Positions 17,744 to 50,634 are shown, numbered from the stretch's first letter. The stretch is 57,844 nucleotides of DNA from Anaeramoeba ignava BMAN (GCA_028826165.1 JAPDFW010000040.1:1-57844); one strand, 5' to 3'. The notes: generated from the sequence alone by a model not told the origin. Translations and numbers: made by a program.

Positions 17744-18799
17744 GTAAGTTTTTAATTAATTAATTAATTTTCTTTTTCAAAATATTAATATTAATTTTAT
17801 AAGAAGATATTTCATTTCCATTTTTAAATAAACATAAACATAAACAAAAACAATATTTTTATTTCAATTATTTTATTAATTAAAACAAAACAATTTTGAA
17901 TTTTTTTAAAATTAATAAGAATATAATCAAAAAAAAAGAAATAAATTTTAATTATAATTTTAATTATAATTTTTATTCCAAAAAAAAATCAAAAAATAAT
18001 ATTTATATTTATTATTTGATTATTATATTTCAATTTATTTTAATCAAAAAAAATAAATTCAATTTCAAATTCAATTTAATATTCAATTATTTTCCAAAAA
18101 AGAAATATTTTCATTTTAATTCATTTTTTTTTAAAAATTTTCAACTTTAAAAATTTGAAAAGAAAAAAAAGAAAAAGAAAAAATTTAAAATTAATATTTA
18201 ATTAATTAATTATAATTCCTCTCTCTTTTTTTTATTTTGTTTTTATTTTATTCAGATTTACAAATTTAATTCAATTTTGTTTTATTCTCAATTCAAATTC
18301 TTCTTTCTTTTTATTTTATTTTATTTTATTTTATTTTATTTAAAATTTTGGATATTAAATCAAGAAAAGAAATTTATTAATTTATTAATTTTATAATTTT
18401 AGAAAAAAAAAACAAAAAGGAATTGAAATAATATTTTCCAATTTAATCAAAAAAAATTATTAATTTAATTTAATTTAATTTAATTTAATTTAATAAGATG
18501 TATTTTTTTATTGAAAACTTCAAAATTAAACAAAAAAAAATTAATTCAAAAAAAATTTATTTTGTAAAATTTTGTTTTTGTTTTTGTTTTTGTTTTTGTT
18601 TTTCAAATTTTATACATTTTTTTTGGTTTCTCTCTTGTAATACAATAAAATTCATTTTTTATAAAACTTCAATTTTTCATTTGGTTTTTTTTCCCTTTTT
18701 GAAAATAATTATTATAAATTGAAATTTGAATTGTTTTTAGTGAATTAATTATATTTGACAAAAATATTGTTTTATAATGAAAAAATAAATATTTTTTTC

Positions 18800-19620
18800 T
18801 TTACAAGAGTTTATTGATAAATTATTACACAAAAAAAAATGGAAAAATCTTCAAGAATCAAATCAAATTCTATTTTCAGTTATTATTTCTTTAGTTATTT
18901 TATAATCCATTTTTATTGAGATTAAAAATATTTTGTATAGAAAAAACACTTCTCATACTCTAAATATGTATAATGATAATAAATGATGTTAAAAAAAATT
19001 GTTTTTAAATTTAAGAGAGTTATAATAATATTTATTTAAACAGTATAAAGACTCAAGAATAAAGAGATGATATAATTTTCTGTAAACATAAAAAAATTTA
19101 ACCATTTTTATTTATAAACCTCTTTTTGAATTTCTCAATATAATGATTTATATCCAGTTTAAATTTACATTTGGATTAAATATCTAATAATGATTGAATT
19201 GAGTTTCTATCCTTATCATTAACAATTAAAGAAATTGATATTTTGTCTTTCCATTTAGATGTAAAATTATTGATTTATTCTTTATATTCTTATTTATTCC
19301 TTTAAAATATTCTTTCCTCAAAATATGAATTGAATCAAAAAAAATTTTGTTTTTTCCAGTTTTTATATATTCAAAAATTATTATTAATTCTCTTATATTG
19401 AAACCTTTTCTTGATAAATCACAAATTATTTGTAATTGAATATTCATCAAATCAATTTCTAAATAAATTATTATTAAATTATTGAAAAAAAAAATACAAC
19501 TTTTCAAATAATTCCTTATATTTTCTATTGTAATTTAAATTATATTCAAAAGTTGTTAAAATTTCTTTTCCAATATCTACAGTTATTTTCTCAAATTGAT
19601 TTTCAGTTAAAAAATGAATA
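18800..19620 (-). pseudogene. Decayed coding sequence, possibly a tyrosine-recombinase-like transposon relic
   Basis: Residual ORF 19226..19507 has GFNIRELII (box I G-x-R-x-x-EL-like, Arg absent) and LHLNGKTK. An HI*SMR stretch lies about 95 codons downstream. Motif resemblance only. Confidence 0.25.
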
Positions 19621-21127
19621 TTAATTAAACTAAAAAATTTACCTATAAGAATTGAAAAAAAATAATAAACTTCTTAAAATGAAATAATTTTTAATCAAAT
19701 AAATATCCAAATTATGAATATTATAAAGGGAAATATCTGGAATAAATTCATTAATTTTATTCAGAAAAGAAGATATCATTTCTTTAATTTTTTTTTTGTA
19801 AATTATGAATTATCTAAATAACAAGAAAAAAAACAAAAGATGAAAAAATTGATTTTTTTTTGATTATTATAAAATATTATTTAATTTAATAAAATAATCT
19901 CTTTCTTAAAAAAAATCAATAAATCTCTTATTATCCTGATCTAAAAAAAATCTAAAAAAATAAATAATTAAATAAAAATTAAATGATCTATATTAAGTTT
20001 TACATTAGTTAATAAATTAGAATTTTTTTATATAAATTTTTCAATTTAGATATTGAAATTTTTTCTAAAAGAAAACAAATTTAATAATTGAGGATTATCA
20101 AGAAAAAACTAATCTCTTTTATCCAATAAAATATTTTATCCAAATTATAATAATTTGATTAATATTTTTCATTATATATTTTGAACTAAGATCTCAAAAT
20201 ATTTTTGAAATAAAAATTATTATAATTTCTATTTCTTCTTAATAATTCAATTTTTTTTTTGGAAAGATGAAAATTTTATTAATTTCTTTTTTTTTGATTT
20301 CATTTTTGTTTTTTTTGAAAATAAATTTAATATAGAAAATTTGAGTTTCCACATATATTTTATTCAAAGGAATGAAAAAAATTTTCTTTCTTTTTTTTTT
20401 TTTCAATAAATTGAGACTCATTTAACATAATAATAACAATATATATATATACTTTCTTCCAAATAAAAATATTTATAAAATAAACAAAAAATTTTATTTC
20501 TATTCAAATCAAAATTTAATTCACTTCATTTTTATTTAACAAAAGATTAACATTAAATTCAGAAATTAAAATTTTATTCTTTTCTTTTTTTTCCAAACAA
20601 AAAAAAATTTAAATTTAAATTAAATTCAAATTCAAAAATAAAATTTATTTGTTATTGTTTTTGATAATGAAAAATGAAAATGGAAATTAAATGAAAATTA
20701 GTTTTATTTAAATTTTTTCTTTTTTTCAAAAATCACACATAAAAAAAAATTTAAAAAAAAACAAAATTTTATATTTTTATTATCTATATTTTACATTTAA
20801 TTTTGGATTATTTTTATTTTCAAAAACAATAAAAAACAAAACAAAATTTTTATTCTTTTTTTTTTCCAAGATTAATAAAATGAATAAATTATTTAATAAA
20901 TTTACTTAGAAAAAATAAAAATATTATTATTATTATTTTTAATATTAAATCAAATTTAAATAAAGAAAAATAAAATAATTGATTTATTTATTTTTGAAAT
21001 GAAAATTTAAATTATTTTCCTTTTTCTTTTTCTTTCTAATTTTATTAAATAAATCAAATTTAAATTTAATTTTCTTTATTCAAAATAATAATAAAAATTA
21101 ATTTATTTATTTAAATAAAAATAATAG

Positions 21128-21402
21128 AGAGTAATTATTTCCAAAAAATTAAATAATAATAATCAAAATATTATTTTTTTTTAAATTTAAATTGTTTTTT
21201 ATTTTAATAAAATTTTATTTTTAAAAATAAATCTAATAATAATAATAATAATAATAGTTGGTAAATTTTATTTAATAATTTAATTTTCCATTTTATTTTT
21301 AATTTGGAAAACAAAATTTATGAAATTAAAAACAAAAATTTTTGAATTTTTTTCTAAAACTTTTTTTTTTTGAATAATAAATAAAATTAAATAAAATAGA
21401 TT
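21128..21402 (+). CDS. 3-nt microexons AGA 21128-21130 (R), TTG 21258-21260 (L), ATT 21400-21402 (I)
   Basis: TAG AGA GTAATT; TAG TTG GTAAAT; TAG ATT GTAAAA, separated by 127 and 139 nt in otherwise almost G-free DNA. Confidence 0.7.
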
Positions 21403-21719
21403 GTAAAATATTAATAATAAAAATTAAATAATAAATTTATTAGATATTATTTTATAAAATTTAAATATGTAAAAAGAAAGATTTGAATTATATTTTTTTT
21501 TAAATATTTTCTTTTCTCTTTTATATTTAAATTTTTATTTTTTTCTTTTCAAAAAAAAAACAAGTTTTACAAAATAATTCTTAAAATTAAATTTAAAATA
21601 AATTAAATTAAATTGGAAAAGAAAAGAAAACAATTTTATTTTTTGAATTTGAAATTATTATTTTGTCTTTTCTTTTGTAAAAATTTTTAAAAAAAAAAGA
21701 AGATATTTTATTATTATTA

Positions 21720-23057
21720 GGGATTGGGATGTATTTGGTTTGCATCCGCTGAAAAGTATATGAATCCGCTTTTTCAATATCGAATGAGCGGAAAAATCTT
21801 TTTCAGCTTATTTCGACTTCTTCGTCGAAAAAAATAAAAAGAAATTGAAATGAAATTTTGTTCTTCATTTTTTTTTCTCAAAGAAGAGAATGAAAGAAAA
21901 ATTGATCAAAGAAAAATTGATCAAAAAAAAATTGGAAGCCAAAAAATTTCAAAAAGAAAAAAAATTTTGATTTTGCTTCTCAGAGTGGATTTCCATTTCT
22001 GATATGATAATTGGTTAGAGCTGCACATATCCCAAAAGTTGTAGAGTATAAATTTACTCTTTCTCCTCTCCAAACTTGATTCATTGAACCCCAAAAATTT
22101 TTCATCCTTGCATAATAATGTTCTATAACAATGCGAGTTCTTGCAATTGTTGCATTGTAAAATTCCGATTCGAGATCTAAATTCCCTCCTCGAGGTTTTT
22201 TGAAAGGAATTTCTGCTTGAGTAGAATGTTGAATCCCAATATACCCTTTATCTGCCATAATAGAATAAGATTGGAACATAGCACTTTCTCCAGAAATTTC
22301 AAAGATTCTTAGATCATGAATAGAACCTTCCACTCCAGTGAAGAAAGACATACACAACCCAGAACATGAATTAATCGTTTGAGATTTTATCACATGGCAT
22401 TTGTGTTTTCCACTAAAATACTTCTTTTGTTCGAATCGATCTTTTGGTCTTTGACACCTTTGACAAGTCACATCCACAATTCCCAATACATTTGGAAATT
22501 CAGCAAATGATGATCCTTGAGCTTCTTGTTCTGCTTTTCCAATCCATCTTATCTGATCTTGAACAAGTATGGGTTCAATTCTTTGAAGTGTGTCAGTAAC
22601 AAGATCTCTTGCCCAAGTTTGAGATATTCCAAAATCACTCCCAAGACGATTCCATGAAGGATAATGTTTTAACCAAACTAAAGTCATCAGAAGAGTTGTT
22701 TCATCAGATAAAATTGTTCTTCTTGCTCCTCTACCCTGTACCTGAAATGCTTCTGCAACAAGATAAAATAGTTGTTGCAATTCTGTAAGATCGAAATTCG
22801 TTAAAATCTTCATCCGATTATCGTCTGAATATTCATCCAAATTCTCATAGCTTATATAACCTTCAAATTGATCATCATCTGAATCAGATTGTTCTTGAAT
22901 CAAATCGGGCTGGTTATTTTGCTCATTTTGTGAATAAAATTCATCAATTTCTTGCATCAAAAAAAATTCAAAAAAAAATTCTTGCGAAAAAAAAATGATC
23001 TGAACAAAATTTACATAAATTCCTTAATATTTTATTGATAAGGATAAATCCCAAATT
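21720..23057 (-). mobile_element. Compact single-ORF PIF/Harbinger/IS5(ISL2)-superfamily DNA transposon, about 1.3 kb
   Basis: Sharp GC rise. The left end GGGATTGGGATGTAT follows TTA, and there is an imperfect inverted match ATAAATCCCAA at 23044-23054. Subterminal ATCCGCT repeats. The right boundary and TSD are uncertain. Confidence 0.7.
21980..22957 (-). CDS. DDE transposase (HTH_Tnp_4 plus DDE_Tnp_4/HARBI1-like), 325 aa from the ATG
   Basis: LLMTLVWLKHYPSWNRLGSDFGISQT (HTH), IVDVT, YFSGKHKCH, GSIHD, ADKGY and RIVIEH..ARMK. Intronless and intact. Confidence 0.92.
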   Translation of the reverse strand: MQEIDEFYSQNEQNNQPDLIQEQSDSDDDQFEGYISYENLDEYSDDNRMKILTNFDLTELQQLFYLVAEAFQVQGRGARRTILSDETTLLMTLVWLKHYPSWNRLGSDFGISQTWARDLVTDTLQRIEPILVQDQIRWIGKAEQEAQGSSFAEFPNVLGIVDVTCQRCQRPKDRFEQKKYFSGKHKCHVIKSQTINSCSGLCMSFFTGVEGSIHDLRIFEISGESAMFQSYSIMADKGYIGIQHSTQAEIPFKKPRGGNLDLESEFYNATIARTRIVIEHYYARMKNFWGSMNQVWRGERVNLYSTTFGICAALTNYHIRNGNPL

Positions 23058-24887
23058 TAATATTTTCCTTCTTCATAATTTTTTTTGTAATTACTTTTAT
23101 ATTCATTTTTATATTTTCAATTCTTAAGTTAATTAAATAATATTTTCTTTTTTTTTTGTGTTTTTTTGTATAAATTAATAATATTTAAATTAAGAAATTG
23201 TAAAATTTACTCTTAAAAAATATTGGGAAAATTGAATTTATAAAATTAAAAAAAAATTTGATAATAATAATATTTTTAATATCCTTGATAATTATGAGAA
23301 ATTCTTTTTCTTTTTAGAAATAATTTCAATTTTTTTTTTAAATTGATTAATTAATAAATCTTATAAATTTTCTTTTGTAAATTGATTAAGATAATAAAAT
23401 AAGATTTAAATTCCTTTTTATTTCTTTTTCTTTTAGTTAATAAATAAATAAATATTTTTATAGATTTAATTTTTATTTATTAGGAAAATATTTGATTTAT
23501 TTTTTCTCTTCTCTTTTTTTTTTCAATTTAAATTTGTTATAAATTTAATATGTTATTATTTTAATTAAGGAAGAGAATATCTTCAAAATTTATTAATTAA
23601 TCAAATTAAAAATTAAATTAAATTGATTGAATATATTTCTTCTGAAAATTCATTTTATTATTTTTAAAAATTTGAAAATTTCTTATTAAAACAAAAACAA
23701 AAACAAATTTATTATTATTATTATTTTTATTTCTTTAATAATTTTATTTGAAAATATTTTTATGTTAAATTTCTTTTGAATTTAATATAATTAATTTTAT
23801 TTTTAAAAAAAAAGAAAAGAGAAATTTTTTAATATTAAATTTAACTTTCTAAATTCCCTAAGTTGAAATTAATTAATTAATTAATTAAAATTTGATATTG
23901 AATTATAATATAGATACATAATTTTCACTTATTATTATTATTGTTCTTTTTTTTCATAATTTAATCAAAAAAATATTTTATATCATTAATATTATATAAT
24001 TTTGAAATATCAAATATTTAATTTATAATAATTTTATTAATGATATTAATTATCAAATTTTTTATTTTTCCAAAAATAAAAATAAAAATAAAAAATTTGT
24101 GTTTTTTTTTCTCTCAGATTAATATCCTTGTTTATAATATAAAAAAAAAGTTGTTTTTTGTTTTGTATATAATTACATTTATTACATAATTTAAATGTGA
24201 AAAAAAAATATTCAAAATTTAATTTCAAGAGTTTTTGTTTTGTTTTGTTTTTTTGATTTAATAAATTTAAGATTTAATTAGTAAATTTTTGGAATTAATT
24301 AATTAATTAATGAATATTGAAATAAAGAATTTTATGAAAAAAAAATGAATTTGGAAATATTGTATAATTTTATTTGGAAATATTATATAAATAAGATAAT
24401 ATTAATATTATCAAGAAGATATATTTATTTTTATATATTTATTTTTTATTAATTTATATAATTATTCAAATTCTTCTATTTGAAAAAAAAAAGAATATTA
24501 AATATTTTTTCTCTCTCTTAAAAAAAATAATTTCAAGATTTTACATAAACAAAAAATAATAATAATAATTATAATTGAATATTTAATTATATTTAATTTC
24601 AGAATATTCAATAATTTGATTATCAATTTCTAAATTTTGATTATTTTCTTCTTAAATAAATTCTAAATTTTCCAAGATTTAAAAAATTTTTTTATTTCAA
24701 TTAATTTTTATTTTGGATTATTATTATAATAATAATAATAATAATAATTTATCAAAAAAAAATTGATATAAAAATATTAATTTATTCAAGAAACAAAATA
24801 ATATTTTTATAAAGAAAAAACAAATTATTTAAATTTTCTTTCTTTTTAATTTTAATTTTAATTTTAATTTTAAAAAAAAAACTTTAG

Positions 24888-25011
24888 TATGTAACAAAAA
24901 ATTGATTTTTAATAATAAATAAATAAAAAATTTTTTTAATTATTTAATTAATTGTTTTTATTTAAAATATATTTTTGATTTTTATTCAATTTAATAAAAT
25001 AATATAAGGAT
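24888..25011 (+). CDS. 3-nt microexons TAT 24888-24890 (Y) and GAT 25009-25011 (D)
   Basis: TAG TAT GTAACA; AAG GAT GTAAAA, the latter 74 nt before exon A6. Confidence 0.7.
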
Positions 25012-25085
25012 GTAAAAAACAAAAAAAATAAATAGAAATAATTTTAATTTTTTTTTTGATTTAAAAAACAAAAACAAAAAAAAAG

Positions 25086-25181
25086 TATACACCTTTACAT
25101 GATTTATGTCAAAACACTTCAATTACAAAAGAGATGATTGAATTATTATTTGATAAAGGAGCTGATTTTCATATTCAAATT
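25086..25181 (+). CDS. Ankyrin repeat exon A6 (96 nt, phase 0-0)
   Basis: AAG acceptor, GTAAAT donor. YTPLHDLCQNTSITKEMIELLFDKGADFHIQI has canonical TPLH and GAD. Confidence 0.92.
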
Positions 25182-28100
25182 GTAAATAAAATTTTGAAAA
25201 AAAAACATACAAAAAAAAGAAGAAAAAAGAAAAAATAAGATATTTTTAAATTTAAATTTAAAATAAATTATTGAAGAAAACAAAATAAAAAAAAAAAGAA
25301 TTGATTGATTATTAATAGATTTATTTACATTTAATAAATTATTTAAAAAAGAAAATAAATTTCTCAATAATTTTCCTTTTATTTCCTTTTATACAAATTT
25401 TCTCAATTTTTTTTTCTTAATCATATTAACATCAACTATTTATATTCAAAATTTAAGAAAAATCAAAAAAAAAAAAAAAAAAAAACAAAAAGAAAAAGAA
25501 ATCAAAAAAAAAAAAAAAAAAAAAAAAATTTTTTAAAGAAAATCAAATTTAAAAAGAGTTTTTGTTTATTTTATTTTATTGAATTTTATTTCTTTTTATT
25601 TTATAAGAGATTGAAGGAAAAAAATGTTATAAATTGGAGAAATTTAAAATTTGGAAATTTGTTAATTTTTCTTTTCTTTCAATTATTCTACTTTTTTTTT
25701 CACAATTATCCTTTCTAATTACATCTTTTTGATTTTATTTTTAACCTCAATATCTTAATCAATAAAAGGTTTTTATTTTTATTTTTTATTTTTTATTTTT
25801 TATTTTTTATAAAAATATAGATATTCATATTTCAATTCTTTTATATTTTGTTTAATAGTTATTTTTTTTGTTATTAGATTTTATCCAATGAATATTATTT
25901 TTAAAATAAAATAAAATAAAATAAAATATTTGTAATATTCTTTCTCTAAATAATATAAGAAATATCTCAATAAATATCTAAAATGAGTATCTTTATAATT
26001 TAATGTTTTGAAACAAAATGTATCAATTTATTGTGAAATATCAACTTAATATTCAATTTTGATTATATTTATTTTTCTAAAATTATAAACAAATTTTTTA
26101 ATTTGAAAACAAAAAAAAATCAAGAAAAACTTTTAATTTCATATTTTTTGTAAAATGAAATGTGAATTATTATTTAATTTTGATAATTATTTTCATTTTT
26201 AATATAATTATTATTCTTAATTTTCATTTAATTTTGATTATCATTATTATTATTATATTTTTTTAATTATATTTTTATTGATTTTGTTATAATAAAATAT
26301 ATATACAGGAAAAGAATAAAATTCTTGAAGAATTTCAATAACATTACTAAAGTTTAGATGTATAAATTTTTTTATAAACTCTATAAAATTAGTATATTCT
26401 TCTTTTAATATTAACCTAAATATTGTTAATCAATCAATTAATTAATTTAATTTTATATAAATTCATCTCTTTCTTCTTTTTTCTTTTTTCTTTTTTCTTT
26501 TTTCTTTTTTCTTTTTACAAATTTAATCTAATCAAAACTTGAAATATTACAACCATAAAATATTTATTTCATGAGTTTTGTATTCCTTTCAAAATTAACT
26601 TCGAAACACAAGAATTTAAATTTTGAGAAAATGAAATGTGTAAAAAAAATATGAAAAAATTTTTTGATTTAATAATCAATTTATATGTTTGATTATTATT
26701 AGTTAATTTAACATCTTCTAATTTAGATTGATTTTGAGAGAAAGATAAATTGAAATTTTGAAATTTCTTTTCTTTTCTTTTTATCTTGGAATATTTAAGT
26801 TTTGTGATTAAATTTATTCATTTTCATTTTAACTTGAATTTTCAATATAATTAATAATTATAATTATAATTAGAATGATTTGAAGGAATTTATTGATCTT
26901 TTTTTTTACTTATTTGAGATTTTTTGTATTTTTTTTTCCTTTTTTTTTAATTTAAAATTTGAGAAAGTTGTATAAAATGTAAAAATATTTCAGTATTCTT
27001 ATAATTCTCCTTAATAAACATGAATTAAAATTATAAAATATTTTAATTTCCCATAAAAAAAATTATCTTTAATTATTTTATTATTACCTAACTTATTATT
27101 GAATTATATTTTCCTCTTAGATAATTATCCATTGTGTTTTTTTTCTTTATAAAAGAGAATTTTATAACAAAATTTTATGGATATATTGAGATCCTATATT
27201 TACTAAAATTGAAAAAAAAATACTTTGTTTTTTTTTCAAATTTTTTATTTATTTAAGTTATTATTTCTTTTTCTTTTTGTTTTTGTTTTTAATTTTCTTC
27301 TATTTTCATTAATTTATAGAATTTCAAAGTTTTTTTTTATATCATAATGAAAACCTGAATTTCAGTTATACAATATATAATTAATAAATTTAGAGAATAT
27401 ATCTTTAATGATTTTAAGTAATTATATTTGTGTTTATCAAAATGGAATAGATTATGAATATTCAAATTCTTTGGTTTGAAACACTTTTGAACAGTAACAT
27501 TAATCACACAAATAATATAATGGAAAATTAAAGAATTTTATATTAAAATTTTATATTAATTTATTTTGAAAATTCTAATATATTTACTATTCTTTAATAA
27601 TAATATTTTCAATTATTTTTGAGATTTCATTAATAAAATCAAAATCAAAAAAAACAAAAATATAATAAAAATAATAATATTTAAGAAGAAAAAGAAGAAA
27701 TGAAAATGAAAAAAAAAATATTAGAAAAAACTTTATAAAATTCCTGATTTAAATTTTTACAAAGAGAAAATAAAGATCAATAACAATATCCTTATTAATA
27801 AAAAATAAAAAATAAAAAATAAATTTATTTTTTTTCTAATTTTTCAAAGATATAATATTTTTGAAGGTAATTGAGAATGATTAAGAGAATATATTTATTT
27901 TTTTGAAAAATTAATTTATTTTGTTATTTCTGATAAAATATTAGTAAATATTAATTTTTTTTTGTTAGATTATAAATTGAAATAAATTCTTCTATTGAAA
28001 AAATTGATTTTTATTTTATTTTTTTATTTTTTCATTAATGGGAATAATTCCATAATATTTTTAAGAGAATTTTCCTTTTTTTTATTATTAAAAAATTATT

Positions 28101-28604: not shown

Positions 28605-30173
28605 AAAGTAAATTATTTATTTAATAATAATATTTTATTTTATTAATCTTTTTTTTTTACATTTCAAGTCAATATCAAAATAAATTTCTTTTTCTTTCTT
28701 TCTAAATTTTTTTTATGGATAAATATTATTTTTATTTTATATTTTTTTATTAATTTTTGGAAAGGAAATAATTAATTAATTAATTAAAAAATAATTTATT
28801 CCAATTTTATTCCTCTTTTTGTTTTTTTTTCCAAATTAAAATTATTTTTATTAAATAAATATTATTTTTGAAAATAAAACCCAAAAAAAAATAATATAAT
28901 AAACTTATTATTATTATTTATTTATTTATAATTTAAAAATAAAATTAAATAAAAAAAAATAAAAAAAAAAATAAAAATAAAAAATTAATTAATTTGAATA
29001 AAATTTATTTAAATAAAAAAAAAACCAATAAATTATTTAAAAATTAAAAATTAAAAATTTAAAATTGAAATTGAAATTGAAATTGAATAAATCTTTTTTT
29101 TTAAAAATTTTAAATTAAATCTAATCTTATTAAAATAATCTTTTTTTTTCTTTTCAAAATATTAAATAGGATGTAAATAAATTAATCCCAAAAAAAATAT
29201 TTGAAAATTAATTTTTCTTTTTTTTATTTATTTTTAAATTAAAAATTTTGAATTTTATTAAATAGAGAGTAAATAATAATTTATTAAAAAAAAAAGAATT
29301 TGAAACAAAAACAAATTTTAAATTTTCTTTTTTTTTTGATTTTTTAAAATCAATTAATTTTAATTTTAATTTTAAAATTTTTAAATTTTTATAAAATAAT
29401 ATTTTTTTTAATCAAAATCAAAATGATATTTTAAAAGAAAAAAAAGAAAATAATTTAAGAATTAATAAATTTTTATTTTATGAAATTTAAAATTAAAAAT
29501 TTTTTAAATTTAAAAAGAATTATTATAAAATAAAATAAATGAAAATTAATTAAAATAAAATAATTTTTAAAGAATTTCTTATTCTAATTATTATCAAATC
29601 AAAATAAAAAATAAAAAATAAATCATTTTTTTTCTTCTATTTCTCTTTATATTTATAAATATTTTTATTTTTAATTTTAAAACTAAAATAATATTTTTGA
29701 TAATAAAAAAATTGATAAAATATTTTACAAATAATTTATTTTTGTTTTACTTTTATAATTTCAATTTTTATTTATTTTCTCATTATCTATTCAATTTTTT
29801 CTAATTTTTGAAATTTATAATTTAAATATTTTAATATTAATAATAAATAAATAATAAATAATAATTATATTATTTATTTAATTAAATAAAAATCTTTTTA
29901 TTTTTATATATTTATTTATTTCATAAATTAGATAAATTTTATTAATTAAATCAATAATAATTTAAATTGAAATTATTCCATTTTTTTCTCTTTTTTTTTT
30001 AAATATTATTTTTATTTCTAAATTCAAAAATAAATTTAAAATTAATTTATTTCATTTTCTTTTTTTTTTCTCATTTTTTTTCATTCTTTCATAAATTATA
30101 TGTATATAAATAAATATATTTTTGATAATTAATAATAAATTAATTTTAATCAAAATATTTTAATAAATAGAGT
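28605..30173 (+). CDS. 3-nt microexons AAA 28605-28607 (K), GAT 29170-29172 (D), AGA 29266-29268 (R), AGT 30171-30173 (S)
   Basis: All four read aaaTAG NNN GTAAAT. Confidence 0.7.
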
Positions 30174-34800: not shown

Positions 34801-34868
34801 AAAGTTGAATAAAGAATTTAATTAATCAAAATGATTTACATTAATAATTTTATTTATAAATCTTTTTA

Positions 34869-35955
<1,087 letters not shown>

Positions 35956-36429
35956 TTAATAATTTTAATTTTTAATAATTAATAATAATAATAATAAAAA
36001 TAATAATTTTTTAATAATAAAATAATAATAATAATTCTTTTTAAATTTAATTTTTAATAAATTTAATTAAATTTAATTTGTTTTTAATTTAAAAAAAAAT
36101 AAAAAAAATTATTTTTTTTAAAAATTTTTTTTTATTAAAAAAAAATTAAATAAAATTAATTTTTAAAATAAATTAAAATTTAATTTAAAAAATAATAATA
36201 AAATTTTTATTTAAAAAAGAAAAATTTAAAATTTTAATTTGATTAAATAAATAATCTTTTTCTTTTGTTTTTTTTATTTATTGATAATTAAATATAAAAA
36301 TAATTAAAAAGAATAAAAAAATTATTTTTGATTTTTTTTTTGTTTAATTTGAAAATTCTTTTAATGAATTTTTCAATAATAAATAAATAATTTGAAATTT
36401 AAATGAAAAAAGAAAAAAAAAAATTATTA

Positions 36430-39400
36430 GAAGTTAATTTGATTCATCATTCAATTTTATCATTCATTTTCTCATATTTTTTATTCTCTGAATTTTATTC
36501 TTTTGATATTGATTTAAGATTGTATTCTTAGTTAAAATATAAATATAAATATAAATATAAAAATAAAATATAAATATAAATATAAATATAAATATAAATA
36601 TAAATATAAATATAAATATAAATATATAAAATATAAATATAAATATAAATATAAATATAAATATAAAATATAAATAAAAATATAAATATAAATATAAATA
36701 TAAAATAAATAAATATAAATATAAATATAAATATAAATATAATAAATTATATGAAGAATTTATTTTATTTTTTTTTTTTTTTAATTTTATTTTTTTTTTT
36801 TATTAATTTTGATTTAGAAGAAATTTCTTTAATTTTCAATTAATTTAAAAAGTTATAATCAAACACATTTTCTTTTTCAATTTCATTATTATATTATTTT
36901 TATTTCTTTTTAATTTTTATATATTATTTGTAAATTTAGATATAAATTGAAATATTTTCTTTTAGATATTTTATTATTTTTTTTTCATAAATTTCTTTAC
37001 TTTAGATTATTCTAATTAAAATTATTGGATTTATTTATTTTATTTTTGTATTTATTCTTCTTTGATTATTTTATGTAAATAATTAATATTTTTCTTTTTT
37101 TTTCTTTTTTTGATTATATTCTTTATATCATAAAAATATCTATTTAATTCATTTGTGAATATTCTTAGTTTTAGAATAATTGGAAATTTTTGTTATATTC
37201 TAGTTAATATTTCAATTTTTTTTTTAAAATAAAATTTTTTTGGTTTCATATTTTATTACTTCATAATATTATTTTATTTTTTAATTTGAAATATTTTTTT
37301 CATTTATTCAATTCCTTTAACTAATAAATAATTTTGGATATATTTTTTATTAATTATTTTTCCTTAAATTTGATTATTTTTTCCTATTTCAAATTAGAAG
37401 TAATTATATATAATTTACATGAAATATTCCTTATTTATATCTATATTTAATAATTTTTTTTTAAATTTTTGTATATATATTTGTTTATTTTTAATATTTA
37501 AGTTATTTATGGGTTTATTAAATTGTTAATTTGTTGATATTCTTTTTGTTTCAATGTAAAGGTTTATGTTTCATAAATTAATTGTAGAATAATGATTATT
37601 TTTTATATTTCAATTTTTATATGATTATTTGTGAATATATTCATAATAAATTTTTAATTTTATGAAGTTATTCTTGGATTTTTTTCTAAGTTGTTATCAA
37701 TATACTTTTTTTTTGTATTTAATATTATTTCAAGATATTTTATTTAATTATATTTATTATTTATTATTTTATTTTGATTAAGATTAAGTTCAAAGTTTTT
37801 TCTTTTAATATTTGATTGATAAATTATTGAAAAATTTATTTTTTTTTTGTGAAGTAATATTCTTTTGATTTTATATTAATATTATCAAATTATCATTATA
37901 TATTTACATATACATATATTCTATTAATGATTCTATTCATATAATTATAAAATAACTTACAATTACAAATATAATAAGAAACAAAAAGATCATTCTGTTA
38001 AATTACAAATAATTATCTATTATAATAATTTATTAAGAATTTCTTGATATATTAATTTTTTGATAAATTTTTTTCAACAATAATAATAATTCTTATAATT
38101 GAGTAAACAAATATATCAAAAACACTTTTAAATATCAATTTAAATTATAACAAAAGAGATTATTTAAATTATTAATATTTTTTCTTCAATTTTAAAATGA
38201 ATATTCTGGAATTTAAACATTTTCAGAATTTTATTTGTTTTTATATTATTCTTTTATCAATATATATATTTAATTTATTACAATCAAATTATTAATATAA
38301 ATGAGTATTTAGTTTTTTTTTTTTAAATTTCCTTTTATATAATTTTCTCATTTGTATATCTTAATAATGGTTTTTAAAACATTTTATTTATATTTTTTTT
38401 GAAGAATTATCAATATTTTATATTTATTTGATTTATATAAATGTTTTTGTACATATCTATTTTATTATAATCAAATATTGAAATGTTTGTTTTTAGATAT
38501 TTTAATGTTTATATAAAGTCTATCTAAATGAAATAATAATAAGTTTAAATTCCCTATATTTTTTAAAATTTCTATATTTATATTTTCAATTTTATTATTT
38601 ATTAATAATTATTAATATTTATTAGAAATATTATTCCATTTTGAATATTAATTTTATTAATTTTATTTGTTTATATATGTATATATATATTTGAGTGATT
38701 ATTTTTATTTCATATTAATAATTAGTTTGATTTATATTATTAATTTCAATATCTTTTTATTATTTTATTCCATTTTTTTTTCCTTAATAATTTCTTTTCC
38801 AATTAAAATTTGTTTTTTTTTCTTTATGAAAGATTGAGAAGTTTATAATTTATTTTAGTTTTTTTTTTGTATCTATATAAATAATATTCCTTATTTTGAA
38901 ATTATTTTTTTTTTCATATTTTTTTTGATTATATTAAGTTTTAATATTAATTTTGTATATGGAAATATTTCTTCTTCCATTTTTTTTAAAGTAATTTTGT
39001 TTAATATTTCTCTTTGATTAATTAATAAAATTGTAATTTAATTATTTTAAATGAGTTTTTGAATATTATTTTAATTATAAGTATTTTATGATTAGATATT
39101 TTGTTTTTTGTTATATCAATTATTTGGAAAATATTGATTTTTTATTTCATTATTAATACAGAAACAATTTATATTTCTTTGTTTTGTAATTATTTTGGAA
39201 TTCTTAATAAATTTGTTTTGTTTTCTATTTCTTCTTTGTATTAAATTAAAAATTCCCTTTCAATAATTTATATTTATTAATATATTTATATTGTACTTCC
39301 ATAATTTATATTATTAATTTATATTTTCTATTTCATATAAAAAGTAATAATGTTAATATCAGAAATTTTTATATGTAAAATATCTGTATCTTTATTTCTC

Positions 39401-39944: not shown

Positions 39945-39983
39945 TGAATTATTTGATTTTTGATTTTGATTTTGATTTTATTA

Positions 39984-43100: not shown

Positions 43101-44067
43101 CTGTTTGATTAAAATCTCCTGCTATTATATATCTTTCCTCTCCTAATTTTTCAATAATATCGTTTAATTGACTCATCATTTGAAATTGTGTTCCATGTCT
43201 CATATAGACTCCAATAATATTTAATTCTCCTATTTTAATTTGTATAATATCCTTATCTGGATGTTTTATTTCTTGAGCATATTTTGATATACATTTTTTG
43301 ATGATTATTGCTATTCCTCCTTGTGCTGTTGTTCCATATCCTTGTTTCTCAAATGAATGATAGTTTTCAAAATATAATCTTTTTCTCAAGTGAGTTTCTT
43401 GTATAATAGCAATTGTTATTCTTTGTTGGAGGAATATTTTTTCTAATTTTTGGATCTTTCCTATTTTATTTAGTCCATTGATATTTATAGATGCTATTCT
43501 GAATGAGAATTGATTTATTTTTGTTAATTTAGTTCCTTTTATTGTTTCAATTTTGTTTCCTTCTGTTGTTTTTAATTGAATTTTGAAATTTCTTGGTATT
43601 CTATTTCTTTCATTTTTACAATCTCGAAAAAGATTTAATATGTTATTTTTTCGATCCCATATCTCAGCTTGATGATTCCCTTTTTGAATGATTCTCAGTG
43701 GGTGAAAATTGTTAATAATGTTAAGAATTTCAAATATATTAAGAAATGATTTTCTGATAATTAATTTATATGAATCTAAAATTTGTAGTATCTTGTTAAA
43801 ATTTGTTTCCATATAATATTTTGAATTTCGATAATTAATTGTTTTTCTTAAATTTGTATCAATTTCCCAATTGTGTTGAATCAGAGAATCTGAAATTTCT
43901 TGTTGTAAATTGTGAGTTCTCTGATAACTATATGGATTATGTTGTTTATAAGTTTTTAAATAAGAATAATTAACGCTTTTATTTATAAATTCTTGTAAAT
44001 CTTTTTGAATTATTCTCTTTGATTTCATTTGAGGAATTGCTTTTTGTATTGTTTCTTTTGATCTCAT
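40120..44067 (-). CDS. LINE ORF2: N-terminal extension, APE endonuclease, reverse transcriptase, CCHC zinc knuckle and low-complexity tail (1315 aa)
   Basis: APE motifs SININGL, IQETH, AGDFN, IDH and SDH. RT motifs YRPIS, QMGFR, DIQKCFD, QGDPLSP, YADD and YLG. Knuckle CPCCGEEEETLDHFLWKC. Confidence 0.97.
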   Translation of the reverse strand: MRSKETIQKAIPQMKSKRIIQKDLQEFINKSVNYSYLKTYKQHNPYSYQRTHNLQQEISDSLIQHNWEIDTNLRKTINYRNSKYYMETNFNKILQILDSYKLIIRKSFLNIFEILNIINNFHPLRIIQKGNHQAEIWDRKNNILNLFRDCKNERNRIPRNFKIQLKTTEGNKIETIKGTKLTKINQFSFRIASININGLNKIGKIQKLEKIFLQQRITIAIIQETHLRKRLYFENYHSFEKQGYGTTAQGGIAIIIKKCISKYAQEIKHPDKDIIQIKIGELNIIGVYMRHGTQFQMMSQLNDIIEKLGEERYIIAGDFNQTDKEMEKHFRFNTQIIHNTENSAIRNIDHFCVKNQNREILSQTVNINQEENLSDHKMIVTIEKINILSEERKEYYQPTKQQFQDMIIEKLRKQNLSEKSMLNISIIKNVKEKFKKRSIIHINTKNKIGINLTEFNSKNKYNWKQALRKRWRETMRGIEIDNQSKTNYWKEVKRITKSRKDIIFNNNEKEKEFKQLIDKIKIPVQESILQEIENKIINIEPDIRSIKQIFPHDKLIKTIQNSRNSSTCDYDKIEMYQNPYIEREHPKYYEFIKSVNRMMREWIRDPNQEVIKYMLSRRMVFIFKQGDPNQISNYRPISINNALVRIFLKRILEEIEPIWEYISYQQMGFRKMMDTRIAVLELQKKLKEIKEPYIISIDIQKCFDTIDHGLIRKVINKFISNNNIKKLLNEYYKGNGCGIYQGDPLSPLIFGMVSHFIIEEIKLRVDHIQMYADDMILLVKNSYNKVITKVQSILQILENYGLRPNKNKTIITKQKRNVKYLGIILDAKKHIENNIEKCEKTFQKLRFIIQSNQISNHLKIIIYKMTILPQLYYGTEALILRKKQYQKMDLMVNKHMKLILKINFHSPTLTFRNETNTPSSRTQINVRRWKIREKLDKIEKSELKELCPIFTNERERNDKIWENQNLKIIQKYLCLARHQEMSINSGWKTIAYSEITKLEPKKPKIKTYLKYQKSTILMKLRIFTNGLKSYSHHMRNSDVKCPCCGEEEETLDHFLWKCPMYQEIRNKWLKSIHPIKQTIKLMKEISRKGIYDKTIEYIQKAFEIRSEMIMDENTIEIDEENIGNEERNQNENQQSDMNNENNNESNNENNNENNNEINNENNNEINNEINNENNNENDNENKNKPKKVRNKSKKKKSNQKEMKIKKKKKKEKERKRKKKKKKKKKKEKKKEKKKEKKKKNKKRETNEKEKKTKIIKSNNRRRNLRKNPEKTWKYQLSKISESDSESETKSWEKESEYDTDYAPDSSSLESSIESD

Positions 44068-44495
44068 TTTAAAATATTTTCATGTTTCTCTTGATTAGAT
44101 TGAATATTTTCAATTTCTTTCTTCTTAATTATTAATGGATTCTTAATAAAGTTATTTGAATTCAATGTTTGATAAATTATTTTTTCTATATTTTCTTTAT
44201 GTGACCGTTGATTTCGATCCGTTATTTTTTCTTTTAATTTCTCAAGTTGATTTTCTTTTGAAGTGTAACTCTCTCTTGCTTTAGATACTGTAATTGAATA
44301 ACCTTCTCTCCATGTTCTTCTTTGTTCTTTTCTTGCTTTCTTATCGTGAATTACTTTAAAGTGTCCATCGGTACTATCCTTATTCCTTCTCAAGTATCCT
44401 CTCACTATTTTATATGGTTTTAATATGTCAAAGAAGACATGTTTTGAAATTAATGGAGAGTCTGCATAAACATACAGGTTTCCCCATTTGTCCAT
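44064..44495 (-). CDS. LINE ORF1, 143 aa from the first ATG, possibly RRM-like
   Basis: Lies upstream of ORF2 with an ATGA stop/start overlap. NLYV...GHFKV...ITVSKAR resembles RRM strand spacing. The ORF-track start at 44504 is a TTG. Confidence 0.75.
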   Translation of the reverse strand: MDKWGNLYVYADSPLISKHVFFDILKPYKIVRGYLRRNKDSTDGHFKVIHDKKARKEQRRTWREGYSITVSKARESYTSKENQLEKLKEKITDRNQRSHKENIEKIIYQTLNSNNFIKNPLIIKKKEIENIQSNQEKHENILK

Positions 44496-44519
44496 TTTTT
44501 TCAAAGAAAAAAAAAAAAA

Positions 44520-45160
44520 TGAATTATTTGATTTTTTTGGAAATTGTTGAATATTATTTCTGTAAAAAAAAAGGATTATAATTATAATATATTTTGAAAT
44601 GAATATAATTAATAAATTTGATGTAATTCCCTTAAAATTATTATTTAATTTCTTCTTATAACATAATTTACTTCCTCTTTATGTATATTTGAATTGTTTT
44701 TTTTATTTATTTAATTCAATTAAAAATAAGTGTTTTTATAATAAATTACTTCTTCTTGATTATTTTCTTCTGTAACAATTAAATTAACATATCTTTTTTC
44801 TTTAATTAATACAAAATTTTCTCATTATCATTTAATTTTTTTCAATAATATTAATATAATCCTGATTAATAATATTGTTAATAATTTCATATTCTTCATT
44901 AATATTATCTTTATTTTTGATTTTTATTTTTTTCATTTAAATTTAAATATTGTTTCTATTCTTGATTAATCTCCTTTTTTTATTTATTTATTTCTCTTTT
45001 TTTCTATTTTTCTTGATTCTTATATTAGGAAATATATTTTGTTTAATATCTTTATATTTAACAATATTTATCAATTATTATCAAGATTTTCATTCAAAAA
45101 TATAAAGGAGAAATCTGCAAAAAATATATATATTTATTTCTCCAATTAATCATTTTTAAA
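44520..45160 (-). mobile_element. 5' part of the old LINE relic that was split by the intact LINE
   Basis: GGAGAAATCTGCAAAAAATATA...TTTCTCCAATTAATCATTTT near 45107-45157 matches the element 5' end at 44455-44500. Confidence 0.75.
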
Positions 45161-45271
45161 ACAAAAATAATAAACAAAATTTATTTCTTTTTATTTTTTA
45201 TTAATCTTTAATCAAATTTTTTTTTAAAAAATTAAAATACAAATAAATAAAAAACAAAATAAATCAAATAG

Positions 45272-45513
45272 GATGTAATTATTTTATAAATTTTAATTAC
45301 AATCAAAATCAATTAAAAAGAAAAAGAAAAAGAGAAAGAAATAATAATAATAATTCTTTCTTATTTAAAAATAATTTAATTAATAAAATATTTCTTTTCT
45401 TTTTTAAATATAAATTTAAATTTAAATTTTAAAAAAATAGTTGGTAAATTTTGAATAAAAAAAAAAAAAATTAATAAATTAAAATAATATAAAAATAAAT
45501 AAATAAATAGAGA
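45272..45513 (+). CDS. 3-nt microexons GAT 45272-45274 (D), TTG 45441-45443 (L), AGA 45511-45513 (R)
   Basis: TAG GAT GTAATT; TAG TTG GTAAAT; TAG AGA GTAAAA. Confidence 0.7.
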
Positions 45514-48500
45514 GTAAAAAATGATAATAACAAAAATAATAAATATTTTTATATTATTCAAACTTCTTTTTGTTTTTAAATTTCTTTCTTCCAATTTTTT
45601 TTTATATTGAAAATTAAATTATTTCATATAAATAAAATAAAATAATGAAGAGAGAAAAATTAAATAAAAGAAATATCTCCAAACTTCTTCTTATTCTTGA
45701 AACTCAAAAACAAAATAAATTTCAATTAAAAATAATTTTTAAATTTTAATAAATAAATAAAATTTTCCCAATATTTAATATTTAATTTTATTTAAATTTT
45801 ATTCTTAATTTAATTAATTTCAAAAAAAAATAATTTTAAAAGAAAAAATTGAAAAAGAAAAATTTTTTGTTTTGAGTTTTATAATGAATGAAATTCCTTT
45901 TTTTTATATATATATATATTTTATAACAAAAATTTTATCTCTTCTTCTTCTCCCTTTTTTTTTAATTAGAATTTTTTTTTTTTAAAAACAAAAAAACCAA
46001 GAATTGAAAAATTTTATTGAAAAAAAAAGAGATAAAAAAGATTATTATCATTTTATTTTTTCAAAATTAATCAAATATTTTAAATTTAATTTCCTATCTA
46101 TATTTAGAAATTCTTAAATCAAAAAACAAAAAAATAAAAATATTTCTTTTTATTTCTCTTATTATTAAAAACATAAAAATTTCTCATTTTAAATGAATAT
46201 AAATTTCCAAAATTTTATTTTATTTTTATTTATTTAAAAAATTTAAATTAATTTCTTTAGTAAATTATAAAATTGAAAAAAAAAAAGAAAACAAAAGATT
46301 ATTTTTATATTTAGAAAGAATTTATTATTCTATAATAATAATAATATCAATATAAATATAAATATCATGAAAATGTGAAAGAATTTATAGATAAGAATAT
46401 TTTTTCCTCCTATTTTATTTGAATATAAATTATAAAATTCAAATTAATTTATTTGTAAAAATATTTAATCTCAAAAGTTTAATAAATCCTCAAAAAATAA
46501 TAAAAAAAATAATAAAAAGTGGAATAATATTTAAAATATAATTTCTATAAATTAAACATTTTCAAAAAAATTATATATAATATATATAATAGAAGAAATA
46601 AGAAAAATATTTAATAATCAAAATTGAAATTATTAATAAAAAAAATATAAAATCATTTCCAAAATATTAAGAAATTATTTTCAAAGTTAACAAAAAAAAA
46701 AGCAAATAAATAAACAAAAAGATATTTTTAAATTTTGTTATAAATAAATATCTAACAATAAAAGTTATAAAAGTTATAAAAAAGAAAATTATAGAAATAT
46801 AAAGTTGATTGTTTATTTACGATTAATATTATATTATTTTTATTTTTATTTTTATTTTGGATTATATTATGGAAATTTTCAAGATTAAAAAAACAAACAA
46901 AGTATTAATTTCTCAAATTTGTTTCATTTATTTTTCTTTTTTCTTTCAAAAAAAAAAATTTAAAAAAGAATTTATTCAATAATTATTGAAATAGATATAT
47001 AGATAACAATAAATTAAGAATTTCTTCAAAAATCATTATATATAATTTTTTTTTTGAATTATAAAAACAATCAAAAAAAGAAAAAAGAATTTAATTATTC
47101 AAATTATTGAAAACAAATCAAAAATAAAACTATTCACAAATAACAAATAAAATGAAAAAGAGAAAAGATTTATCATTATCCAAAATAATAATAATAATAA
47201 TTCAAAAAAAAACAAATGAAAAGAAACAAACAATAAATATCAAATCAAAATCTTAACTTTTCAATTTTCAAAATTATAATTAATTTTAGAAAAACAAAAT
47301 TTTAATTTGATTTAAGAAGAAAAAGAAGAAAAAGAAGAAAAAAAAATTTAATAATATTTTCTATTCTTTTAATATTTGATCTAAATTATTTTTTTATGAA
47401 TTGAATTGAAATAAATTTAATTATATTTAAATTAAAAAAGAAATTATAAATAAAAAAACATCAAATAATTATTTGGATTTATATTTTCTTCATTAATTAA
47501 TTTTTTTTTTGATAGAAAAATAAAATGAAAAATGAAATAATTTTTAAACTAAAGATACAATAAAATTATTTTTTCTCTTATTATTAGAGAAAAAAAAAAT
47601 GAAAATCAAAATATATCAAAGATAATTTTTAATAATTATTTCTTGTGATGATTATTTGGAAAAAGAAATTAATTTCTAATTTTATTCAAATAATATTTAA
47701 AATCTTTTTTTATAATAATAATAATAATAAGAGAAAAAATAATTTAATCTATTCTTAATTCAATTAACATAATTTATCATTTCATTCTTTTTTAAAAAAA
47801 TTTTTTATTTAATTAAAAAATGTTAAAATATAATATAATCTGAAAAATAAAAATAAAAATAAAACTAAAAATAAAACTCTATTGGAATCATATTCAATAA
47901 ATTTCTTGATTTATCTTTCATTTTTTTTTTAGTAAATTATAAAGAAAAAAAAATTTATTTATTTATTCTTTATTTGAAATTATTTTTAATCAGAAAAAAG
48001 AAATAAAGAAAGAAAGAACTCAATTCATTTTTTTTTCTTTCCCATTATTATTATTATTAAAGATAAAAAGATAGAAGTTAATTTAATTTATTTTATTAAA
48101 GAAATTTTTAAAAATGAAGTTTTATTTTATTTTTATTTTTATTTTTATTTTTATTTTTATAATTAATTAATTAAAGTTTTAAAATTCTAATTTAATTGAT
48201 AAATTTATTGTTTTATTGAAGAAATATCAAAAAAATCAAAACTAATAAATCAAAAATGAAAATGAAAATGAAAATGAAAATGAAAATGAAAATGAAAAAA
48301 TCTTTCTATTCAAATAATTTTTTCTTTTATTTTAATTTATATTTTTATATTTATACATTTATCTCTTTTTTCTTTCAATAATAAATCAAAATTTTTTAAA
48401 ACCAAAAAAAAATTAAAAATTATTTTAAAAAATAAAAATAAAAATCAAAAATTTTAATAATTTGAAAATTAATATTAAAATATTATTATTATTATTTTTA

Positions 48501-49569
48501 TTCATTTTTTTATTGATTAACAATAATATTCCCTTTTTTTTTAATTTATTTATTATTTTTCTTTTCTTTATTAAATAATTTATATTTTTATTTATATTTG
48601 TTAAAAAAAAAGATATAAATAACAAAAAGAATAAATAGAATATAAAATATATTTTATTTTCTAAATTCTTCTTCTGAAAAAAAAAAGGGGAAAAGTAAAA
48701 GATCTAGAAAAATATTATTAATATTAATAAAATAAAGGAAAATTTAATTTAATTTAATTTTTAAAAATAAAGTGAAACAAAACAAGAAATAAATATAAAT
48801 TTATTTAAATATTAATTGAAATGAAAAGAAAAGAAAAAATTTTCAAATTAAAAAACAACAATAAATATAAATATAAAATATAAATAATATTAATAAAAAA
48901 AATGTATTTTTCTTTTATTTTTTCTTCTTATTTTTATTTTTATTTTTATTTTTATTTTTTATTTGGAATAATAAAAATTGTTTTTAAAATTAAAATTAAA
49001 ATTTAATTTAATTTAATAAATTTGAGAAAAGAAATAATTATTTATTTTTTTGTTTGGAATTATTAAATTATTTACTTTTATTTTTAAATTTAATAAAAAT
49101 AAGAATAAGAATAAGATATAAACTTATTAATGTATATTTTTTATAATTTTTAAATTTTAATCAATAAATTTATTATTTTAATTATTTTGATTATTAAAAT
49201 AAAAGAAAATTAATATAAAAAAAATCACAAAATCAAATATTATTTTTTTCAAATTCTTTTTGATTATAATAAAAAAAAATTGGAAAATAAAAGAATAATA
49301 AATTAACAATAAAAACAAAAACAAACAAACAAACAACAAGAATTAATTTCCCTTTTCCTTTTTTTTTATTTTATTTTATTGAGAAATTTTTTTAAATAAA
49401 AGTCAAAAGAAGAAAATTTATTTCAAAATTAATTAATAAAAAAAAATGAGATAAAATAATTTAATTATTTATTAATAAAAAATGAAAAAATACACAAAAA
49501 GAAAATTTTATCAATTTTTATTTTGTTTTAAAATTATTTCTTTAATTATTATTATTATTAACCAAAAAT

Positions 49570-49850
49570 TTAAAAAATAAATAATAAATAAATAAAATTT
49601 TGATTTGAAATTAATTAAATTAAAAAATAATTGAAATGTTGTAAATTTTAAAAATTTTTAAATTCAAATTTTTCAAAGGAAAAAAATTGAAATAAAAATA
49701 ATTCAAAATTATTTTTGAAAAATTTGAAAAATTTGTTTTTATTTTTAATTTAATTCATTATTTATGCAACAAATCAATTACAACAGATAACTAGGATTTT
49801 GATTAATAAAAGGAGTTAATTTCAATTTACAAGAGTAAAAATTTACAAAC
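49570..49850 (+). pseudogene. Corrupted duplicate of ankyrin exon A8 and its upstream intron
   Basis: TTCATTATTTATGC..AACAAATCAATTACAACAGATA..TAGGATTTTGATTAATAAAAGGAGTTAATTTCAATTTACAA matches 50645-50730 with indels, and the acceptor is lost. Confidence 0.75.
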
Positions 49851-49859
49851 TTTTTAAAA

Positions 49860-50463
49860 TTTTCTTTTGAGTTCACATCTCAAAAAGAAAAAGGGATCAC
49901 AATTTGAATTTCATTTTGAAGATTTTAATATGCTTTATCAACCATTAATGAATATTCTTGAAAAAATCTTCCATACCAAGCTCATGAGAAAAGTTGTTTC
50001 ATTTTAAATTTCATAATTATTTATTTTTGTTTGATTATTGAAAAAAGTTCGACTTTGATTGAAATAAACTAAGAAAATCTTAAAATCCAAAATTTGTTAG
50101 AATTTTTAATCTCTGTTCATTATTATTTTTGCAGTTCAATAAATTTTATTGAATCAAAAAATCTAATTTTTCTTCATTATCAGAAAATTAATATAAAAAA
50201 GAATTGGTTAATGATTTTATTGAGAATTTTGATAAAATTAAAATAAAATTGGAAAAAATGATCAAAAATAATTTTTCAAAATAATTCACCGAGATCCTTT
50301 TTATTTTAGGGACATTTTAAATAAAAGAAACTTCCTCATTTTATTTTCAAAATTAATCATTTGAGATTGAATCTCAATTAACATCTACGGAAAAAAATTT
50401 CGAGGATAATTTTTGCGACCAAATATAGATATAAAATTAACCAAGAGGATTCCATCCCAACTT
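49860..50463 (-). mobile_element. 5' fragment of a Harbinger-like element related to the 21.7-23.0 kb copy
   Basis: The minus strand reads KILTNFGF* and ETTFLMSLVW, against MKILTNFDL and ETTLLMTLVW. The terminus CCATCCCAACTTTAA shares the TTGGGATG terminal motif. Confidence 0.8.
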
Positions 50464-50634
50464 TAAAAATAAATAATAAATAAATAAAATTTTGATTTGA
50501 AATTAATTAAATTAAAAAAATAATTGAAATAAAAATAGGTAAATTTAATAAAAAAATTTTTTAAATTCAAATTTTTCATCATAAAAAACAATAAAAAAAA
50601 ATAATTCAAAATTATTTTTAAATTTTTTATTTAG

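Follow-up and report, generated by a model that had tools for sequence, protein, structure and literature searches.

Arrays of single-codon exons in the inter-repeat loops of an Anaeramoeba ignava ankyrin gene family

Between the ankyrin exons of a gene on contig JAPDFW010000040.1 of Anaeramoeba ignava BMAN (GCA_028826165.1) lie what appear to be exons of a single codon each. The question raised by this locus is whether such exons are real and, if they are, whether splicing chooses among them. The window analyzed here is the whole contig (C42; 57,844 nt) of the 42.8-Mb assembly, and the feature under study spans positions 17744-50634. An earlier note on this DNA had proposed that two expanded arrays of single-codon exons are combined by alternative splicing into variable binding loops. 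The reading we favor, with a probability of roughly 0.55, is that the arrays are constitutive loop-coding sequence, that the diversity resides in the DNA of paralogues, and that the window holds a contracted and most likely decaying member of the family.

Anaeramoeba ignava is a free-living anaerobic metamonad with a genome that is 80.65% A+T. Its annotated introns (n = 32,108; mean length 300 bp) are 91.86% A+T, and RNA-seq data exist for the strain (PMC11550330). The G+C content of the window is 13%, and a BTB-domain open reading frame (ORF) at 1499-2680 has 100% identity to an A. ignava NCBI protein. Judged from sequence, the gene in the window is one member of a multigene family with dozens of members. 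Exon searches across the genome found dozens of members of the 96-nt ankyrin exon family, and the family architecture combines an N-terminal BTB/ARM region (a kinase or other region in other members) with an ankyrin domain.

We defined a unit as AG-NNN-GTA and scored candidates with a weight matrix of splice sites trained on 234 chained units from compact paralogues. On the + strand, the first interval, from ankyrin exon 17648-17743 to ankyrin exon 25086-25181, contains five units (R L I Y D), and the second, from there to 50635-50730, contains seven (K D R S D L R). The matrix passes exactly these 5 + 7 units in the two intervals and no others; an additional candidate, ATT at 36519 followed by GTATT, failed it and was rejected. 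The three ankyrin exons and the 12 units are listed here with their state in copies on contigs C79, C108 and C25.

17648-17743, + strand: ankyrin exon A5, 96 nt, ending ...NLSG, with AG and GTAAGT flanks; Pfam Ank_3, 22.3 bits
21128-21130, + strand: AGA (R), score 13.3; codon identical in C79, C108 and C25
21258-21260, + strand: TTG (L) here, TGG (W) in both C79 and C108, GTG (V) in C25; flanks identical
21400-21402, + strand: ATT (I); GCT (A) in C79, C108 and C25; flanks identical
24888-24890, + strand: TAT (Y), kept in the copies; aromatic at this array position in most paralogues
25009-25011, + strand: GAT (D), kept in the copies; also the last unit of the array in most paralogues
25086-25181, + strand: ankyrin exon A6, 96 nt, ending ...HIQI; open, with AG and GT borders
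28605-28607, + strand: AAA (K), unchanged in C79
29170-29172, + strand: GAT (D) here, TCT (S) in C79; flanks identical
29266-29268, + strand: AGA (R), unchanged in C79
30171-30173, + strand: AGT (S); TAT (Y) in C79; flanks identical
45272-45274, + strand: GAT (D); GAA (E) in C79
45441-45443, + strand: TTG (L); ATG (M) in C79
45511-45513, + strand: AGA (R), unchanged in C79
50635-50730, + strand: ankyrin exon A8, 96 nt, ending ...NLQK; Pfam Ank_3, 22.4 bits

Across the window, 25 sites pass the matrix on the + strand and 4 on the - strand (binomial p = 1e-4). When the spacing k in AG-N(k)-GTAA was varied, the + strand gave 24 matches at k = 3 and 0-10 at every other k, and the - strand gave 5 at k = 3. 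At the compact locus the corresponding counts are 62 at a spacing of 3 and 0-6 at other spacings. The 25 unit codons have a G+C content of 27% (window background, 13%), and the splice-site scores of the window units range from 11.4 to 18.2 (training median, 15.3). Pattern and matrix together thus bear out the 12 units named in the earlier note, as well as its statement that none of roughly 25 is a stop codon (0/25 of the matrix-passing + sites). A spacing of 1 (AG-N-GTAA) is mildly enriched on the + strand of the window (10 vs 4; 6 vs 0 in the compact locus), which may reflect exon ends of the form AG-A/GTAA. Many acceptors in the window, and in the compact arrays of C73 and C93, are AAG or CAG preceded by A-rich rather than pyrimidine tracts.

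Genome-wide, the string ATAG-NNN-GTAAAT occurs 970 times versus 126 times for the reversed control, and its four-N version 82 times versus 215 for the control. No stop codon is present among the first 100 matches listed. In compact members, the units are chained by 54-100-nt AT-rich introns with a strong (A/T)AG acceptor and a GTAAA donor. The evidence from RNA comes from P0148, the translation of an A. ignava Trinity transcript (EukProt EP01156), which was found by a HMMER scan with exon 25086. Its two loops comprise 14 and 8 residues, all of which map, in order, to successive AG-NNN-GT units at C73:176663-177616 and C73:177858-178331. The C73 paralogue therefore has 22 units that have AG and GT borders and are retained in mature mRNA, and the coding role that had been claimed for such units holds for 22/22 of them. 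We conclude that the 3-nt units are genuine exons on the basis of the C73 transcript; for the window's own units, splice-site signals predict the same. P0148 is the only transcript-derived family member in the protein databases searched, and word-indexed protein searches with P0148 and with P0022 (residues 205-390) recovered nothing new from the family.

Could the whole array normally be spliced out as a single intron, with unit-bearing mRNAs minor and the AG-NNN-GT sites at most stepping stones for long introns? Two NCBI models, P0022 (KAJ5069519) and P0041 (KAJ5067461), do join the 96-nt exons directly and in frame, and G-x-TPLH is recreated at the first junction. These models are predictions, and the sister models P0077 (KAJ5069518), P0013 and P0002 (C79) read into introns. 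Because several family models do so, they look like prediction artifacts rather than evidence of skipping. Whole-array removal is also at odds with the units in the P0148 transcript, with the G+C enrichment of unit codons and their lack of stops among the first 100 genome-wide matches listed, and with the enrichment of a spacing of 3 but not of zero. Moreover, the 54-100-nt introns of compact arrays need no stepping stones. We regard this explanation as very improbable.

The position of the arrays in the fold follows from the exon boundaries. Exons 17648-17743 and 50635-50730 reach the curated Ank_3 cut-off (22.3 bits) and cover positions 3-29/30 of a profile 30 positions long, so the arrays stand for the positions at the two ends of the repeat, which form the inter-repeat hairpin, where the earlier note had placed them. 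Exon 25086-25181 alone had no Pfam match at E < 0.01; it shares 84% identity with the exon at C93:125623, which lies inside P0022 (PF00023, PF12796, PF13606). The three exons represent three consecutive repeat types of the family, and the repeat period is 32 residues for the exon alone and 37-46 with the units included. A single-sequence AlphaFold model of P0148 had a mean predicted local distance difference test (pLDDT) score of 40 and was too poor to inform the fold.

Several conserved features of the ankyrin repeat are themselves encoded by the units. At one junction the exon itself supplies the ankyrin G of the G-x-TPLH start, and at others that G is a single-codon exon; in several arrays the canonical glycine of G-x-(S/T)P is a single-codon exon. 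The ends of the arrays are kept: an aromatic residue followed by D precedes the second exon type, and the canonical ankyrin G precedes others. The upstream exons end in ...SG and ...QI, matching the earlier remark that they end in G or I rather than D, but the two repeat types end this way throughout the family. A search for hidden ankyrin exons that would split the arrays was made with the family hidden Markov model (HMM), which detected none in the window intervals, C79 or C108, bar a degenerate fragment at 49702-49791.

At the two corresponding junctions, paralogues have 5-14 and 4-14 units. The compact C93 locus (C93:124123-131121) has 13, 10 and 8 units between the same exon types in one copy, and 13, 10 and at least 7 in its tandem partner. 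The junction before exon 17648 is the only one with three units, and it involves the following features.

12094-12195, + strand: ankyrin exon A4, 34 aa (family HMM)
12363, 12475 and 17451, + strand: single-codon exons E, Y and D after ankyrin exon A4 (weight matrix)

The nearest collinear copies of the window are at the ends of contigs C79 and C108, with 93-97% identity. Across the first interval the count falls from thirteen in C108 (R W A stop H P D W D F Y Y D) to nine in C79 (R W A K N D Y Y D) and five in the window. The additional units of the copies (4 in C79 and 8 in C108) adjoin a Harbinger element, in sequence that the window lacks, and one C108 unit (TGG) is silenced in C79 through a lost AG. 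In the second interval, C79 has eight units and the window seven. The eighth unit of C79 is GGT (G), at 386301, 112 nt before the last exon. In the window, an exact 3-nt deletion of this codon leaves two introns that abut:

50537-50540, + strand: fused AG-GT (junction 50538/50539), an exact 3-nt loss of the GGT unit of C79

As the copies carry 9 or 13 and 8 units where the window has 5 and 7, and paralogues reach 14 at both junctions, the arrays that had been described as expanded are in fact contracted. Differences between copies extend to whole repeats and not to loop codons alone, since C79 lacks a 13.6-kb block of the window (3909-17526) with ankyrin exons A1-A4. In the NCBI model of C79, the ARM-like region is followed directly by the counterpart of exon 17648.

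Recent tandem duplication of intron-plus-codon units in the compact arrays was considered and rejected, given that neighboring introns show no extra similarity. Introns within these arrays are no more alike when adjacent than when distant (0.17 vs 0.18; shuffled, 0.09). The lack of sequence relationship among them indicates that the arrays are old and maintained.

These results bear on the proposal that units are variably included, with as many as 32 x 128 combinations of loop sequence and length from one gene. Since every subset is in frame and no window unit is a stop codon, products of skipping would not be targeted by nonsense-mediated decay. A 3-nt exon would leave almost no room for exon definition, which makes some skipping mechanistically plausible, and exon skipping does vary the micro-exon genes of Schistosoma (PMC10526429). 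The one transcript available, that of the C73 paralogue, has all 22 units in order, and the splice-site scores of the window units are ordinary. Tandem paralogues keep their array lengths (13/10 and 13/10) while their residues differ, structurally conserved residues are single-codon exons, and the window arrays are contracted rather than expanded. In combination, these observations make variable inclusion quite unlikely.

Under the constitutive reading, the helices of each repeat would be encoded by one 96-nt exon, and the inter-repeat loop would be spelled residue by residue by 3-nt exons. Introns would be removed singly by intron definition, probably 5′ to 3′, an order that would join each tiny exon first to the long upstream exon. 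If introns are removed one by one in this manner, the arrays would be constitutive loop-coding sequence rather than a menu. Loop diversity would arise in the germline DNA of paralogues, where the routes observed are codon replacement, exact codon deletion, loss or gain of units via splice-site mutation, and larger deletions. The variation that is visible is germline, occurs between paralogues, and affects both loop sequence and loop length.

To quantify this variation, the window was aligned with C79 and C108 and sites were classed by type. Microexon codon sites differ at 8/37 (C79) and 7/33 (C108), about 21%. In the same alignments, intron divergence is 1.2-1.3% at A/T sites and 3.4-5.1% at G/C sites, the 96-nt ankyrin exons diverge by 1.0-1.6%, and splice-site positions by 0-1%. 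The excess at microexon codons is significant in both comparisons (Fisher p = 5.5e-8 and 1.7e-6), and corresponds to codon substitutions about 15 times faster than in the surrounding introns in the BTB-ARM-ankyrin subfamily. At 17451, for example, GAT, AGA and AAA occur across the window and its copies with identical flanks. Local mutability near G was rejected as the cause of the hypervariability, as non-exon G-NNN-G contexts differ by 0.6-1.2%. The simplest reading would be diversifying selection on a recognition loop. The link to recognition proteins drawn in the earlier note is supported in that the units are part of a diversifying family of probable recognition proteins.

Several features of the window copy suggest that it is probably a decaying paralogue. 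Its introns are 3.4, 3.5, 3.4, 15.1 and 5.1 kb long, versus <100 nt in compact members, and it contains the following mobile elements and damaged exons.

9264-9363, + strand: ankyrin exon A2a, 100 nt; the C108 exon is intact at 99 nt, and the extra T here shifts the frame and gives in-frame stops
10516-10615, + strand: ankyrin exon A2b, a tandem duplicate of A2a; +1 T frameshift relative to C108
21720-23003, - strand: PIF/Harbinger-type DNA transposon in an intron, with a transposase ORF at 21980-22960 (DDE_Tnp_4, E = 6.6e-26); common to C108 and absent from C79
39962-44519, - strand: non-long-terminal-repeat retrotransposon (long interspersed nuclear element) in the 15-kb intron (RVT_1, Exo_endo_phos); absent from C79
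49702-49791, + strand: degenerate ankyrin pseudo-exon, possibly the A7 of the earlier note; a decayed local duplicate of exon 50635, which is single copy in C79

The same architecture with constitutive inclusion could also belong to a working gene, in which the long introns are spliced and the shorter arrays and changed codons are adaptive recognition-loop variants under diversifying selection. The codon-specific excess of substitutions, far above that of any neutral site class, fits this. All 12 units keep consensus splice sites, with 0-1 of about 90 splice-site positions differing between copies, and all three in-range 96-nt exons are intact. The published mean of 300 bp implies that introns well above 100 nt are annotated in the species. 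Against a working gene are the frameshifts in the two upstream ankyrin exons and the introns, 3-15 kb long against 54-100 nt in compact members. In addition, the 7 kb that follow 50730 yielded no further ankyrin exon and no C-terminal one, and the ankyrin exons are not measurably more conserved between copies than the introns. We consider a working gene possible but somewhat unlikely.

Some observations weigh against the reading of constitutive arrays in a decaying copy. With regard to decay, the A2a and A2b frameshifts sit in T runs, where assembly errors are possible, the 3′ end of the gene could lie past the contig end, and the supra-neutral rate of codon substitution argues for recent selection. 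With regard to constitutive inclusion, the directly joined NCBI models also form near-canonical, in-frame 32-residue repeats, and the RNA evidence comes from a single assembled transcript, that of one paralogue, and leaves room for minor isoforms. The unit at C108:197143 has a TGA codon with a very strong splice-site score (17.8); the copy may be dead, the site may go unused, or TGA may be unusual here. Finally, the codon excess is absent from two other recent paralogue groups (0-7% vs 1.3-10% in introns), and is therefore a property of the BTB-ARM-ankyrin subfamily, a group of six or more members.

A bolder extension of the constitutive reading is that the arrays form a codon-modular system for the evolution, and perhaps also the expression, of variable recognition loops, such that each loop residue could be separately replaced, deleted, silenced or created with the frame kept. 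The approximately 15-fold excess would then stem either from very strong diversifying selection on BTB-ARM-ankyrin adaptors or from codon-targeted exchange using the splice-site consensus shared on either side as microhomology, with a somatic layer on top if inclusion also varied in the RNA. We think it unlikely that this extension holds.

Other features of the contig were noted in the course of the analysis. The 5′ part of the gene is as follows.

1499-3870, + strand: 5′ part of the same gene, encoding a BTB/POZ domain (PF00651) and an ARM-like region; P0001 maps there

The NCBI model “protein aardvark” covers this region and then reads on into the intron. An approximately 160-bp tandem repeat occupies the contig start (window 1-1400) and is also found upstream of the C79 copy (C79 about 352,000-353,900). 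Intronic microsatellites, (AAAATC)n-like, (ATATAAAT)n and (AAT)n, occur at window 8750-10320, 16742-17143 and 34865-36035, and the (AAT)n tract is common to the window, C79 and C108. At the other end of the contig, 56270-57844 is G+C-richer and non-genic-looking, and is probably another mobile element. Two GAT units at 56274 and 56449 are in or beside this sequence and may not belong to the gene. Elsewhere in the genome, C1:409308-413054 and C1:1057922-1068449 (both - strand) are regions in which ATAG-NNN-GTAAAT units recur by the dozen, roughly 70 nt apart. Those of the second region are mostly ATT, ATG, ATC, CTT and TTG, and would spell a long hydrophobic stretch codon by codon.

Up to 14 consecutive 3-nt exons in a transcript, and about a thousand or more such exons in a 43-Mb genome, go well past the microexons in the literature searched. 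As far as we found, constitutive arrays of single-codon exons are undescribed there. No mention of runs of 3-nt exons was detected in the genome paper (PMC11550330), the intein paper on the same genomes (PMC10710043), a 2026 A. pumila preprint or full-text literature searches. Runs of this kind are a hard test case for how the spliceosome recognizes exons with essentially no length. Given that the public annotation skips the arrays or reads into introns, its intron count (32,108) is probably in error, as are the loops it gives for whole protein families. With this architecture every loop residue becomes an independent evolutionary unit, and the codon-restricted divergence between near-identical copies is a clean, testable signal of diversification in apparent substrate-recognition proteins, in a protist living alongside bacterial symbionts.

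Among known systems, the micro-exon genes (MEGs) of Schistosoma have runs of very short symmetric exons of mixed length (3-81 bp), and their families are tied to protein variation (PMC10526429). Exon symmetry of this kind means that any exon can be lost without a frameshift. The A. ignava genes resemble MEGs in that coding sequence is split into very short symmetric exons, but MEGs have long introns and encode most of a small secreted protein. In A. ignava, the units are uniformly 3 nt, are normally separated by 54-100-nt introns, and are confined to the inter-repeat loops of an ankyrin domain, and the proteins start with a BTB domain instead of a signal peptide. Skipping is documented for MEGs, whereas what RNA confirms in A. 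ignava is runs of up to 14 units. Isolated 3-nt microexons are known from animals, in Drosophila homothorax, RPS24 and MAP4K5 (PMC7392893, PMC11162997, PMC8632122). These likewise splice one codon as its own exon, but they are single, rare and often regulated, whereas A. ignava has runs, with roughly a thousand stringent matches genome-wide.

Recursive splice sites of long Drosophila and vertebrate introns also place 3′ and 5′ splice sites side by side, and removal of intron segments in sequence is probably how a 3-nt exon is handled as well. They leave nothing in the mRNA, whereas the A. ignava units leave three nucleotides. Zero spacing is found 4 times on the + strand and 6 times on the - strand of the window, and once in the compact locus (versus 62 at a spacing of 3); one of the zero-length sites in the window was created by the codon deletion at 50538/50539. 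In Dscam1, tandem arrays of short coding units serve a recognition protein, and exactly one exon per cluster is chosen through competing RNA structures. The A. ignava units are not mutual alternatives in this sense, and the one transcript seen, that of P0148, includes both sets in full (14 and 8). Rapidly evolving BTB or F-box substrate adaptors are a further parallel, with a BTB domain joined to a fast-evolving binding domain within an expanded paralogue family. In libraries of designed ankyrin repeat proteins (DARPins), variation is concentrated at the hairpin and loop positions of the ankyrin repeat. The A. ignava loops, whose role in recognition is putative, vary at the corresponding place in the fold but are much longer than the DARPin hairpin, with 5-14 extra residues.

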